A stretch of DNA of 63,109 nucleotides, filler included, from Hyphochytrium catenoides (lineage: Eukaryota; Protista; Hyphochytriomycota), in assembly GCA_900088475.1 (NCBI GenBank). It is 12 parts of 12 records of this genome, joined end to end, with 100 filler letters (N's around TTAATTAATTAA, not from the genome) between each part and the next. Parts side by side here need not be neighbours in the genome. Positions count along the whole stretch, not along the records: positions 32,375 to 36,967 come from FLMG01004264.1; 11 more parts are not named here. One strand, 5' to 3'. Below the pieces are notes generated by a model. That model was not told where the DNA came from. It searched no databases and was given only the letters and a program-made list of their open reading frames with translations. Each line of letters begins with the position of its first letter. Position 1 is the stretch's first letter. The position numbers were made by a program, and so were the translations under genes. This document shows, piece after piece, positions 31,852-39,011 of the stretch.

Positions 31852-32675
31852 TCTCTCTCTCNNNNNNNNNNNNNNNNNNNNNNNCTCTCTCACACTCTCT
31901 CTCTCTCTCCTCTCATTCTCTCTCTATTCCTCTTTCTCTATTCACTCTCTATTTCTGGTAAGAGGTCTATGATTATCAAACAGCGGTTATCTTTTGTTAG
32001 ATAAGAAGCCAAAGATGGGCAGTCGTAGTAATATCTATGCTCATCGCCGCCAGGCCTAGGTTGTACAAAGCTGTAGGGACTGTTGTCATAGTAATACGTC
32101 TAGGGATTGACCACAGCCTAGTTGTGATTGGCTAAACTCAAAAAATACGTGCTTTGCCCATTTCGGATATACGAGAAAATCGGGATAGCATCCGACAATA
32201 GGCGACTATATAGAGGCCTTAGGGCTGGAGGAAGCAACTACTTGAAGGGTTATCATACTGCAAATAGAGGTCTTNNNNNNNNNNNNNNNNNNNNNNNNNN
32301 NNNNNNNNNNNNNNNNNNTTAATTAATTAANNNNNNNNNNNNNNNNNNNNNNNNNNNNNNNNNNNNNNNNNNNNAGAGAAACTCGTAAGCAGCATGTTAA
32401 GGATATCAACCCAGAGGAGTGAAGAGACCAATCTGAGCCGTCGCAACAGGAGAGAGAAAGAGAGATCAATAGGTGATGGACGATCATGGCTCGATGAGTA
32501 GAGGAGGAAATAAAGAAGGAGCGACAGGCAGAGCGAAAAGGGAGAAAGGAAAAAGAAGGGAGAGAGACGGAGAGTGACGGAGAGGGATGCAAGGAAAAGA
32601 AAAAAAAGAGAGAGAGAGAGGCAGAGTGAGGAGAGCCCAAGAAACATGACAAGAAGTAAAGAAATAGAGGAGTAC

Positions 32676-33945
32676 CGGTAGACATTGCAATGTCTGAGGC
32701 TATGATCACGTCAGGGCTCTCAGCGGACGGAGGGGCAGGAGGCTTGTCTTTTCCGCCTTCAACGTCATCCTCTCTCTCTTCCCTTTCCTCATTACTCTTC
32801 CCCGTCACCCAGATGAAGGAATGAGAAGGATGGCGAAGCGTGGAGGGGATAATGACCAAGAGCTGGTGCCACCACAGAAACCTATTCGTCTCGTTCTCCC
32901 TCCTCCAGCTCTGGCTCGTCAAGTTCAGCAGAAACGCTGATTGCAAGAGAGGAATAGCCACAAAAGGCACAGGTAGCAAGGCGCGGAAAAGAGCAGAGGA
33001 GAGAGAAAGAGAGAAAGGAGGAGAAGGAGAAGAAATGATTGATGAGGCCAGAACATTGAGGGAGAGAGTGAGTCAGTCTGTCCAACCAGTGAACAACTTC
33101 CCTGTTTCTTCACGGGCAGGCAACTCTTTGTCTATCTCCCTTAGCTTCCGGTTGCCTCTCTGCTATGTCATTAGTTCTTCGCCTTCCTTGTGATTCACGT
33201 CTTTCTCCCATGTTGACATTCTGAGTTCTCTTCCTTTCACTCTCACACTGATTGCCCATTGTTTCTTTTAGGCACCTAGCCTTTCAGTCTCTGCCCCTCA
33301 AACGCTGTCTCTCTCTCTCTCTCTCTCTTTCTCTCCCTCTCTCCTGTCTCTCGCTCGCCCTCCCTTCCTTTTGCTTTCCCTCTTTTCTAGACCCCAATCT
33401 CTCTATAATTGCTGACCTTTGTAGCTGTGCCTCCCATCTCTAGACTTGGCGCTGAAGGTGTGCGGGAGCTGTTCCCAGCGGCTCTGAGGGTCAGGGCGAT
33501 AGACGTAGGAGTCTAAGGATGTGCAAGGCAGGGCAAGGGCTTTGCATCGCATGTAGGTAGAGGACGAGAGAGGAGAAGAGGAAAAAGAAGAGAAAGGCGA
33601 AGATGAAGAAGGGAGAGACTCAGCTGAAGGCGAAGCCGAGGAAGGCAGGGACAAGGAAGAAGGAGATGGCGGTAGAGAGGAGAAAGGTTCCATGGCTGGA
33701 TTCAGGCTCTCTTCCTCTTTCTGGGGTCTCTCTCCTCCTTCCCTCTGATCATTGCCTTTCCATTCATGCTCCCACACACTAGAAGAGAGAGAAGAGGCAC
33801 CAGGAGAGAGCCGGAGAGAGCTCAACGCCTCTGTCAACGGCAGAGTCACCGCTGCCTGGAAGCTGAGCATCGCCGTTGTCCACCCCAACGAGCAAAGAAA
33901 GCGGCGGAAGGTCTTCCCTGAGCAAGTTCTGGAGGATCTCGGCAT
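32676..33945 (-). CDS. PqaA (PhoPQ-activated pathogenicity-related) / Dictyostelium AprA-family protein, 5' part; truncated by contig end
   Basis: An exon ending at 33417 (TSLDSYVYRPDPQSRWEQ...SYK) splices in frame to exon 32936-32676 (AFLLNLTSQSW...LWWHQLLVIIP...FIWVTGKSN). These match the family motifs LDxYVxxPDP, LxLTSQxW and WWHxLxIxxP. The start codon is uncertain. Confidence 0.8.
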
Positions 33946-34695
33946 ACTGCTGATAAGTAAAGGGCAATGGATCAGGGAGAGGAATCTTCCAGAAGAGAGA
34001 GAGAGACAAAGAGGGGCCGATGAACGGATACGCGGTTAAAGATAACAGAGAAGAAAGAGAAAGATGAGGTGAATGAAGATGACAGAAAGAGAGAGATAAT
34101 GGAGAGAGCTTTGCACTCGCGGTGAGCTCATGCAGCAGATAAGCGTAGAAAGACGAGCCCTGAGCAGAGTCGGAGGATGAAGGCCTGCAGCAGCTTGGAG
34201 AGAAGAGGAGACTATGAGCTAGAGAGATGCGAGAGAATTGACGAGAGAAAGAGAGACAAACAAGCGAGAGAGAGAGAGAGACAGAGACAGATGGAGCGAG
34301 AGCAAGAGCGAGCGAGAAAGACAAGGGAGAGAAGAACGACGAGAGAGAGAGAGTGAGTTGGGCTTCTCTTCTTCGTGTTAGTCAAGCGTGTTCTCCCCCA
34401 GGAACTTCAAGGAGAAAAGCTATTCACCCTTTAAATTCTAAGAGTGGTTCGAATGTATGCATGAAGTCAAAGACGTGGACAAGGAGAAAGTTATATTGGC
34501 CTTTACAAGGTTTTTCCCTTTTAGAGCTACCCCAGGACTAGCCCGTAAGCTCCTAGACTCCCTTTGGTCAGTGTGGAGTATGGCTTTCTAAGCATTGTTT
34601 ACAAAGAATGTGAGAGGAAAGAAAAAAAGGAGTGATAGATAGAGAAAGGAGAGAGAATGAGGACAAGAGAAGGTGTGTGTGTGTGGGAAGGGGGT

Positions 34696-34737
<42 letters not shown>

Positions 34738-34944
34738 GAGGGAGAGAGAGGGAGAGAGAGAGAGAGAGAAGAGAGACTGGGGGAGAGGAGAGGAGAGTGA
34801 TGTTTATGTCTGACAACAACGAGGAAGAGATCTTAGTGGGATCGTCATTGCCCTTTCTTCCCCTTCCTCTTCCATCAGGAGAGGAAGTAAAAGAAGAGGA
34901 GCAAAAGAGGAGAGCAAACGAGGAGAGCAGAAGAGCCACAGCTT

Positions 34945-34992
<48 letters not shown>

Positions 34993-35035
34993 GCTTCCAT
35001 CTCTTTCTTTCGTGCCAACACTAGGAAGTGCTGAT

Positions 35036-35571
35036 CTACTCTCTTGGTAGTGTGTGCTGCCACTTGAGGAACATATAGAGAAGGACCAAACCGATGACGA
35101 GGAAGACAGTCACCGGAAGGTCTTCCAGTCTCTTCTCTCTCAGTCTCTCCCAGTTCCCGATGAGAATGAGATAAACCATTGTCTCGCACACCATCGCCGA
35201 GGCGCCGAGACAGTCTCCCACAATTCCTTGTATAACACCAAGAAAATACCATCGAAGAGAGAGAGAGAGAAAGAGACAAGCCACCCAGCAGACAACGGCT
35301 TGTAAAGGAGAGAGAAGGAACGCCGTGACGCCAAACTAGGGAGCCGAAAGGAGAAGGGGGAGAGAGAGAGAAAGAATGAAAAGAGAGAGAGAGACACACG
35401 AGAGAGAGTGAGGAAGTCAGAACAACAGATCAAGACAGAGAGAAGATGGAAGGAGTTAGGAAAGAACACTTTTAGCTGGCAAGACGTAGAGGTAAAAAGC
35501 TGAAAGAGAGAGAGAGACAAAGAGAGGAGGTTAGGGGAGACATACGCTGATGATGGACAGATAGCTTGAAC

Positions 35572-35622
<51 letters not shown>

Positions 35623-35759
35623 GTAACTCCGATCAAATAAGTAGGAAGAGCCCTCTTAAAAACGAGAGAGAGAGACACATGAGCTGGAGATTGAAGGAGA
35701 GAAGGGAGCCAGGGCACAGACTTGAAAGGAAACTGTATATATAGAGGGAGCATAGTATT

Positions 35760-35802
<43 letters not shown>

Positions 35803-36494
35803 ATTAAAGGAAACGTGATAGAACAATGAGAGGTCGAGGTTTTAAGACAGTCGCCCTTTACCGTCCAGGCGCCTGCAAGGAAAATCCTGGGAGGAGAGAG
35901 ATACTTCGTGGCATCCGCAAAATCGTAATAAATTTGGTCTCTCTCTCTCATACTTTGGTCTCGGAGATAGGGCATGGAAGAGACCAGGAGTACAGGGACC
36001 CTAGAGACAGACAGGGAAGACGGTTAAACAAGTAGAGAAGGACAGCAATTATGACAAACAGACACAGAGAGAGAGAGAGAGAGAGAGAAAGAAAAAAGTG
36101 AGAGAAGGGACATAATTGGCCGGAGACAAAGAAGGGAAAGCTGAGAAAGGAGAGATCGGAGACTGGCGAAGAGGGAAAAAGCAGCCAGTCAGAAAAGAGA
36201 GAGGCAAAGAGAGAAACGAAGGAAAAGAAGAGACGGAGTGAACCACAACCGGTGGTGGAAAGAACTGGAGAGAGAGGAAGACAGAGAAGGCCTAACATAA
36301 AGGAAAAGTTGGAGAGACAGCAGGCTAGACGTTAGAAGAGAGCGTCACAGACCATCTAGCCAGCGTGTGCGCAGTGATGAGGGCAGTTGGCGCGAGAGAG
36401 AGAGGAACAACAGAGAGAGAGTACAGCTTCAAAGCCATCGCCAGCAGGATCCCGATGCAGCCGTATGTACCAAGCCTAGAGGAGAGAACGAAGA

Positions 36495-36531
<37 letters not shown>

Positions 36532-36533
36532 CA

Positions 36534-36572
<39 letters not shown>

Positions 36573-36897
36573 TTAAAAGCTGAGGTAGACGAGAGAAAGA
36601 TGAAGAGAGAACTGCATGACAAGGGAAAGAAGAGAGAGATTGTGGGAGCAATGGACAGAAACTCTCATTTGGCACTAGTGGCCAGGCAAGAAGAGGAGAG
36701 AAGAAAAGAAAAAGAGACAAAAAAAGAGAGGGAGAGATACGAGAAGAAGGACAAGAGTGAGAGAGAAAAAGAGAGAGAGTCAGCCAAGAAGCAGACGACA
36801 AACCTGCTGTCTTTCATGATGGTCAGGATCTGAGTCTTTCCCCAGCCGCCTCCAAACCCATCGAAGGTATCCGCTAGCCCATCTTCGTGGAAGCAAC
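35036..36897 (-). CDS. cobS: Adenosylcobinamide-GDP ribazoletransferase (cobalamin synthase), 3' four exons; 5' end lost at linker
   Basis: Exons 36897-36804, 36475-36353, 36000-35862 and 35335-35036 splice in frame: [37 protein letters not shown]...AHTLARW...PYLR...[10 protein letters not shown]...stop. HxDGLADxxDG, IMKDSRxGxxG and GxxGDxLGA are CobS signatures. Confidence 0.93.
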
Positions 36898-39011
36898 CTA
36901 CGCGGGATTGTTAGGGCCTTGTGCCTCTCTCTCTCTCTTCTTGTTCTCTGCATCTCTCCTCTCTCTCNNNNNNNNNNNNNNNNNNNNNNNNNNNNNNNNN
37001 NNNNNNNNNNNTTAATTAATTAANNNNNNNNNNNNNNNNNNNNNNNNNNNNNNNNNNNNNNNNNNNNAACAGACAGCACGACCAGGAAAAAGCAAGCAAC
37101 AGCGGCACCGGGTTAGACAGGATGATCAATTGGTCAGCTTTATATGCTGCTCCAGACGGCTCAAGTGCTAGTGATGATGTCACTATTGGAGTTGTTTCCT
37201 ACGAACCTTTGAGCTTCTCACTCAGCTTTCCATGCTGATCTCTCAGGGCTTTGACCTCCGGCTATGATGTTTCAGTTAGCTCAATCCCGTGAGAAAGGAC
37301 AACATAACACCGATGGCTTGCGAAGTACTTCTTGGTAACCGTACCGTCCAAGTAAGACGAAACAGAAGACTGATACCTTGCTAGTATCCAGTGTTCCGCA
37401 GCTGTCTGCTGTCCCATTGCTACTACGGCCCTCGCTTTCCTCCCTNNNNNNNNNNNNNNNNNNNNNNNGGTCTGCTTGCAGAAGGCCGTCAATTCTATGC
37501 TCTAGCTCCTGGAGACAGTACACAAGTGGGCGTTCGTCCAAGCTTAGCAGACAGCACTATCACGCATCCTCAACGGTGTGTCGGGAGGTGGTAACATCTA
37601 TCCTTCACCAGCAAAGAGTCTCTTCCGCCGCCAACCGCTAACTGACCTCCAAAGTCTTCTCTAAGCGGATCCGGGGCAAATCATAGCTCAGGTATCGGAA
37701 GACTCGGTGAATCTATAATGAGAAACATGCCAGAGCAGACAGGTTGATTAGTGATCAGGAAGAGAAGGAGGGCTGGTCAATCATCAGGATGATGATGGTG
37801 GTGGGCAGACGGCAGTAACAACATAAAGAATCGGCCTAAGATAAAGAGAGCTGCGGCTTCAAGGGCAAAGCTAAAGAGAACATGAAGAGACTGAATAAAG
37901 ATAAACAGAGAATGGCAGAAGAAAGACTGAGCTGGAAACCGTCGTATGGCAGTATGAACAACGATGTTCCTACTTAGTTATTTTTATTTAGGAGGACCAC
38001 CAGCATGGCGCTCGTGCGACAGATTCAAGGAACGTACACGCCCACTTCTTCTTCAACCACCTACCTGAATCTCTTCTTCTAGTGTGCTATGAGCCATTGT
38101 CTGGCCTTGCTATCCTCCTGTACGAGAGGATGACCTCCTTCTTCCTTTCTTGGCTTTTCTTTCAGCAGGTGCTCTATCCGTTGTTGTCAATCTTCTAGAG
38201 CTTGTATTGTATGTACTGCTGCCTAACGTGCACTAGAACGGTTGTAGGTCCAAGGAAGGTAGTGGCTTTTCTTGTCGGAGGTCTCGTTGTTAACCTCCTC
38301 TACAAGCTCCGAAATCCATCGACGAAAACCCTGTCGCCCATGGGAAAGCTTATCTTCTCATAATATCAGAGTTGTTCTTGCCTCCTGCTGCCGTCTCTTC
38401 TTCCCTAGCCACCACAGCGCCAAGCACGACTGCCGTCGTCCTCCAGTTATTGCATCATCTGCCTTCTGCTTGCTGTTGGAAGAGCAGAGACAACGGAGGG
38501 ACCGAGGATGAGGACAGGAGGTGGAGGACGAGGAGGAGGCGGCGGAGGAGGAGGAGGGACCATCATCAAGCAGCCCCCACCTAGAAGGAAGTTTTTCTTC
38601 TCACTCACAATACTGAAACGGACAAGCCGGCATCTGAAATCAAATGTTAATTATCTCGGAATGATATTCGGATTATGGCAACGGATCCGTAATCCTCATG
38701 GCGGAGGATGGTTGTGGTGATGATCTTGTCTTCGGGTGGCTGTTGGTCATCATCAATCGTCAAGGAGGAGTGGCAGATGGTCGGTCTGATGATGATGATG
38801 AGTCATCTTCTAGTGCATCTCCTCCGCGTCCTGCCGCCGCTGCTGCGGTTGCTGCCAATGACAGTCTCTCTCAGGCGTCTGCTTATCCCAGCTCGATATG
38901 AACACAACCTCCTCTAGATCCTTATATCACGTAACGCAAACAGAAAAGAATAAGAGTCTTGGCTGCAATCATAGCCGCAGTCTTACTGAAAGTTTGACGC
39001 GCCTGGAGTTA

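Follow-up and report, generated by a model that had tools for sequence, protein, structure and literature searches.

CobS/CobV is the adenosylcobinamide-GDP ribazoletransferase (EC 2.7.8.26), and to our knowledge eukaryotes cannot make the corrin ring. Chlamydomonas reinhardtii and Pavlova lutheri, two species that carry out pseudocobalamin remodelling if DMB is supplied, were described as having genes for COBT, COBS and COBC (Helliwell et al. 2016, PMC4850488), as were 46 further MMETSP strains (about 11%) belonging to Alveolata, Stramenopila, Hacrobia and Viridiplantae; the top non-algal COBS match came from Sphaeroforma arctica, and the algae possessing COBS lack CbiZ, CbiB and mostly also CobU (PMC4850488). 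A study of horizontal gene transfer in diatoms discussed remodelling in some species by way of CobS, CobT and CobC, and listed further genes of the late cobalamin pathway (CobN, CobA/CobO, CobQ, CobD/CbiB and CobU) as horizontal transfers (10.1101/2020.01.24.918219). According to a 2026 preprint, CrCOBT is required for remodelling in Chlamydomonas; no Chlamydomonas COBS knockout showing the phenotype expected could be isolated, which leaves the function of eukaryotic COBS itself unproven (10.64898/2026.08.07.738727). Work cited in the same preprint indicates that the CobS of Vibrio cholerae is needed for pseudocobalamin remodelling.

The ability to convert one form of B12 into another shapes the nutrient exchange between bacteria and eukaryotes, and nuclear COBS serves as a marker for predicting B12 remodelling in algae. 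The window studied here, a stretch of 63,109 nucleotides of joined genome parts, includes a 4.6 kb piece (32375–36967) whose minus strand probably carries the 3′ part, in four exons, of a nuclear COBS gene with spliceosomal-type introns, likely to serve corrinoid salvage or remodelling. Both this class of gene and its reading in terms of remodelling are already described (Chlamydomonas, Pavlova, the MMETSP strains and Sphaeroforma) and are not a new idea; the finding leaves the existing picture of B12 biology unchanged and adds one more intron-bearing COBS, a data point in a scattered distribution that may go back to one ancient transfer or to several.

Gene model and splice junctions

The piece has a G+C content of about 50% and is rich in (GA)n/(TC)n runs. 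Three-frame translation of its minus strand revealed four open blocks of ordinary amino-acid composition, designated exons A to D (Table 1), with 218 open codons across them within the piece. A preliminary description of this DNA had proposed four exons joined in frame across GT-AG introns at 35036–36897, and had pointed out that the ORF track displays no single gene there. The limits prove to be exact, as 36897 directly follows the usable AG and the TAG stop codon ends at 35036; the phases match at the junctions, and the ORF list contains only separate short fragments of the gene.

Table 1. Features of the putative COBS gene and of the neighbouring sequence (positions in the window; exons and introns listed in the direction of transcription)
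Feature	Position	Strand	Description
Upstream intron, 3′ end	36898–36967	-	Ends CGCGTAG; 23% pyrimidine on the sense strand; cut by the edge of the piece
Exon A	36897–36804	-	Phase 1 start (xGT, probably Gly), 30 full codons
Intron 1	36803–36476	-	328 nt, GTTTGT...CTCTAG, 83% pyrimidine on the sense strand
(TC)n array in intron 1	36495–36569	-	Reads (AG)n on the plus strand
Exon B	36475–36353	-	LGTYG, then one hydrophobic helix, to AHTLAR
Intron 2	36352–36001	-	352 nt, GTCTGT...CTCTAG, 80% pyrimidine on the sense strand
Exon C	36000–35862	-	46 codons and one base, divergent loop region
Intron 3	35861–35336	-	526 nt, GTAAAG...CCCTAG, 78% pyrimidine on the sense strand
(TC)n arrays in intron 3 (TRF)	35760–35802; 35576–35619	-	Read (AG)n on the plus strand
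Exon D	35335–35036	-	99 codons (to 35039) and TAG stop (35038–35036); last CobS helices
C-terminal motif GIVGDCLGA	35201–35227	-	Within exon D; Val of GIVGD at 35219–35221
C-terminal extension	35039–35146	-	36 residues past the last profile column (hmmalign)
Hydrophobic segment of the extension	about 35060–35128	-	19–23 residues; exon D residues about 70–92
Ordinary-composition stretch	34400–34600		200 nt, non-repetitive; no family match
Non-repetitive island	33780–34000		Open frames 33782–34000 (minus) and 33749–34036 (plus)
PhoPQ_related exon	32767–32931	-	Within the open stretch 32377–33072

The first base of exon A was fixed by an in-frame TAA (36913–36911) five codons upstream, which leaves the AG at 36899–36898 as the only usable acceptor. 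Since exon A starts in phase 1, at least one further exon must lie upstream, beyond position 36967; the exons encoding the N-terminal part, about 80 residues (CobS positions 1–79), are located past this edge of the piece.

The junctions were compared with a profile of bacterial proteins built in the present study. A search with the open stretch around exon A as the query led to 44 bacterial cobS loci and 39 CobS proteins, of which the 36 of normal length were used to construct a profile of 259 positions. Exon A ends with ...AAA GAC AGC AG / GTTTGT, where AG begins an Arg codon interrupted by intron 1; the G at the start of exon B makes it AGG and completes the sequence KDSR. This codon corresponds to profile column 110, which is occupied by Arg in 34 of the 36 bacterial proteins and by Arg here. 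Intron 2 also splits a codon, exon B ending with AGA TG / GTCTGT and exon C being preceded by CTCTAG and starting with G; the resulting TGG (Trp) falls on column 154, where six of the 36 bacteria likewise have Trp.

For the junction of exons C and D, all combinations of a GT or GC donor with an AG acceptor that leave an open frame were enumerated. Among these, the donor ACG / GTAAAG (35861) with the acceptor CCCTAG (35336) forms the single GT-AG solution in phase 0, and only this model, with the acceptor before 35335, keeps the residues matching profile columns 198–211. An alternative pairing of the GTAAAG donor with an acceptor at 35298 was rejected, as the phases mismatch; two other open GT-AG pairs, running in phase 1 to the same acceptor, were rejected for the loss of the residues of columns 198–211, and alternatives with GC donors were not preferred. 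In the chosen model, every one of the six splice sites has a canonical sequence and a matching phase, and the four-exon gene is predicted to be spliced and expressed.

Base composition gives the same borders. The sense strand contains 78–83% pyrimidine in introns 1–3 versus 41–62% in the exons, the dips in pyrimidine content coincide with the predicted exon borders, and the sole dip between exons B and D is exon C. The TC microsatellites that had been ascribed to the introns are there, as (TC)n arrays, one in intron 1 and two in intron 3. The composition flips within one gene, the cut upstream intron being 77% purine.

Relationship to the CobS family

Profile searches were conducted exon by exon, with 36806–36895 (minus strand) as the query for exon A. 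Exon A matches positions 60–88 of the 207 of the Pfam family CobS (PF02654; E 1.3e-10), and its 42.2 bits alone exceed the gathering score of 23.2, which places the gene in the CobS family by a curated threshold; it also matches positions 80–108 of the 255 of NCBIfam NF001277, the adenosylcobinamide-GDP ribazoletransferase equivalog (E 1.6e-12). Exon B matches Pfam CobS at 90–123 (E 0.1) and NF001277 at 110–152 (E 0.006), and exon D matches them at 162–207 of 207 (E 5e-4) and at 208–253 of 255 (E 3.7e-5), respectively; the NCBIfam equivalog cut-offs (about 273 bits) relate to whole proteins and are out of reach for single exons. Exon C had no Pfam or NCBIfam match. With the bacterial profile built here, the matches were 80–109 for exon A (E 4.5e-21), 111–153 for exon B (E 3e-8) and 198–257 of 259 for exon D (E 1.9e-11), while exon C matched weakly at 157–171 (E 0.19, not significant). 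The matches of exons A, B and D are collinear, abutting and on one strand, no column is lost at any junction, and each bacterial CobS compared matches the three exons in the same order. Chance cannot produce such a pattern of collinear exons, junctions and composition.

Of the 35 columns covered by the exons in which at least 90% of the 36 bacteria agree, 32 have the identical residue here; Leu119 is replaced by Ile, Gln242 by Met and Thr233 by Val. Exon A contains a 16-residue motif stretch and IMKDS; the 11 residues corresponding to the HxDGxxDxxDG motif are identical in every invariant column. The KDSRxG motif is also kept, with KDS at the end of exon A, Arg assembled from AG/G and LGTYG opening exon B. 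The C-terminal motif G-x-T-G-D-x-L-G-A reads GIVGDCLGA in exon D and has Val in place of the Thr that occupies this position of GxTGD in 36 of 36 bacterial CobS proteins. This Val represents the sole non-conservative change in a core motif. Thus, the signature motifs reported in the preliminary description as intact are so in the case of HxDGxxDxxDG and KDSRLG, while GxTGD is altered to GIVGD.

Hydrophobic helices are present in exons B and D. The additional C-terminal hydrophobic helix, already noticed in the preliminary description, was found as well: past the last profile column, the protein continues with a charged linker that includes a 10-residue charged stretch, and then with a hydrophobic segment whose Kyte–Doolittle 19-mer windows reach 2.3. 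The extension is absent from all 36 bacterial CobS proteins. Pyrimidine-rich DNA readily translates into hydrophobic peptides, which calls for caution in the prediction of this tail. No solved CobS structure was found in the PDB, whether the query was exon A or a complete bacterial CobS.

Exon C is the weakest part of the gene model. It is supported by its composition, its splice phase, its length (46 residues, where the profile has 43 columns) and a Y-x-R sequence, the counterpart of the bacterial YARED motif, aligned at the conserved profile columns 165 and 167; compared with the nearest bacterial subfamily, its loop is longer by about eight residues and does not contain the SKxKP stretch. 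Between exons B and D, the bacterial profile did not distinguish exon C from other stretches with an open frame.

Exon A is 70–86% identical to CobS of Bacteroidota, Beta- and Gammaproteobacteria and Acidobacteriota. Outside exon A, the identity to the bacterial CobS compared is 30–45%, which argues against a recent transfer, and no group stands out as the donor. An exhaustive search of representative proteins with 86 residues of exon D found no matches at E ≤ 0.001; as this query is short, the blank rules out only library proteins at least about 45–50% identical over the stretch, and an ordinary bacterial CobS would stay below significance. Word searches with exon D and with the open stretches of exon C (183 aa) and exon B (162 aa) gave no candidate, within a length window that may exclude full-length kin; a metagenome scan with exon D detected no relative, and the ESM Atlas returned no usable match. 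These blanks show that the spliced protein and its close orthologues are absent from the searched libraries; they do not mark the gene as unusual among eukaryotic COBS.

Neighbouring sequence and possible host lineage

A second gene is represented by an exon on the same strand, about 2 kb past the stop codon of cobS in the downstream direction. The exon matches positions 29–83 of the 367 of the Pfam family PhoPQ_related (PF10142; E 2.4e-9), to which Dictyostelium AprA belongs, and the remainder of this gene extends beyond the left end of the piece. Between the two genes lies a non-repetitive island flanked by purine-rich runs on the plus strand. Neither of its open frames, minus or plus, had a significant Pfam match, and the island could represent a third gene's exon or a UTR. 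The 200 nt of ordinary composition downstream of the cobS stop may be a 3′ UTR or intergenic. Searches for tRNA genes and Rfam families within 32375–36967 found none.

The composition of the introns has a described parallel. In Physarum polycephalum, introns are described that consist almost wholly of pyrimidine-only or purine-only repeats with plain GT-AG flanks, such repeats break the assembly into short pieces, and one gene has a 94% A+G intron together with a 92% C+T intron (PMC4758236, PMC2258281); the introns described here are similarly pyrimidine-rich or purine-rich within one gene. Literature matches for the name of the PhoPQ_related family in eukaryotes concern amoebozoans, namely Dictyostelium AprA and Neoparamoeba. 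By analogy, the style of the introns and the PhoPQ_related neighbour tentatively hint at a myxomycete-like (Physarum-like) amoebozoan rather than an alga, a lead that is somewhat more apt to fail than to hold. If this lead is right, the host would be a bacterivore, for which the remodelling of prey-derived corrinoids would be a sensible role. The fuller version, in which a COBS of a Physarum-type bacterivorous amoebozoan, diverged in its helix, loop and VGD motif, converts the cobamides of prey for the host's own B12 enzymes, is speculative and rather unlikely as a whole. Were the amoebozoan reading true, corrinoid remodelling would extend from phytoplankton ecology to predatory protists and to an axenically growable organism; a slime-mould-like amoeba would offer a convenient non-photosynthetic system for testing the role of COBS.

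Predicted function, alternatives and comparison with known systems

The gene may be regarded as a eukaryotic descendant of bacterial CobS/CobV, with a product predicted to be a multi-pass membrane enzyme. Such an enzyme would attach alpha-ribazole (or its 5′-phosphate), and with it the lower base, to an activated corrinoid, a step that would complete the nucleotide loop of a cobamide. As eukaryotes do not synthesise the corrin ring, its most likely use would be the salvage or lower-ligand remodelling of bacterial corrinoids, as proposed for the algal COBT/COBS/COBC set. The suggestion of remodelling is reasonable by analogy and matches the work on the algal genes (PMC4850488; 10.64898/2026.08.07.738727); the completeness of the gene, the activity of the enzyme and its physiological role are likewise read from the DNA and should be regarded as putative.

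The identity of exon A to CobS of Bacteroidota and Proteobacteria, up to 86% over 29 residues, could suggest bacterial contamination or an assembly chimera in which a bacterial cobS is broken by microsatellites. This explanation is effectively refuted: the interruptions occur exactly at GT and AG with compensating frame changes and remove no profile column, the remaining exons are only 30–45% identical to any bacterium compared, and a second intron-bearing gene follows downstream on the same strand. Spliceosomal-type introns indicate a gene of a eukaryotic genome and not bacterial contamination, and the argument from introns put forward at the outset holds, with three complete GT-AG introns of consistent phases and a further one cut by the edge. 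A decaying relic, i.e., a unitary pseudogene of a transferred cobS that is open in this piece yet unexpressed or inactive, would account for the Thr to Val exchange in the invariant GxTGD, for the Gln to Met exchange three turns later, for the divergence of exon C and for the lack of relatives in any protein or metagenome search. It appears improbable, however, as an open frame of 218 codons runs through the four exons, whose base composition is ordinary, the six splice sites are all canonical with matching phases, a split codon restores a conserved Arg, and decay would be expected to lose some of the conserved columns, 32 of 35 of which are kept.

It is also conceivable, though quite improbable, that the gene encodes a functional membrane transferase of the CobS family with a shifted role, for example exchanging lower ligands directly on complete cobamides, with no GDP-cobinamide as intermediate, or using a non-corrinoid acceptor. 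The VGD motif, the rebuilt loop of exon C and the added transmembrane helix could suit a different substrate, and the departures from the bacterial proteins sit in the loop and in the C-terminal motif. The need for CobS in the remodelling of pseudocobalamin by V. cholerae, as cited in 10.64898/2026.08.07.738727, may be counted on the same side, and so may the lack of CbiZ, CbiB and mostly CobU in the algae with COBS, which leaves the classical substrate without an obvious source (PMC4850488). However, no change affects the core motifs HxDGxxDxxDG and KDSRxG, and no sequence feature points to another substrate. A nuclear COBS taking part in corrinoid salvage or remodelling is the preferred reading of the locus.

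The nuclear COBS genes of algae and protists are likewise CobS homologues in the nuclear genomes of eukaryotes incapable of making corrinoids de novo (PMC4850488; 10.1101/2020.01.24.918219); the comparison covers the kind of gene. The CobS of V. cholerae, according to the work cited in 10.64898/2026.08.07.738727, similarly belongs to an organism that does not synthesise the corrin ring and remodels imported cobamides; it is bacterial, intronless and experimentally tested, whereas the protein described here is known from its gene sequence alone. The closest correspondence is with bacterial CobS/CobV (PF02654; NF001277 subfamily of Bacteroidota, Accumulibacter and Photobacterium), which has the same order and content of conserved blocks and hydrophobic helices at the same places, profile positions 79–257 being fully covered here. 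Unlike the bacterial genes, the gene described here has three spliceosomal-type introns (four with the cut upstream one), and its product differs from the bacterial proteins in the exchange of Thr for Val in GxTGD, in a longer loop without SKxKP and in a tail helix within 36 additional residues.
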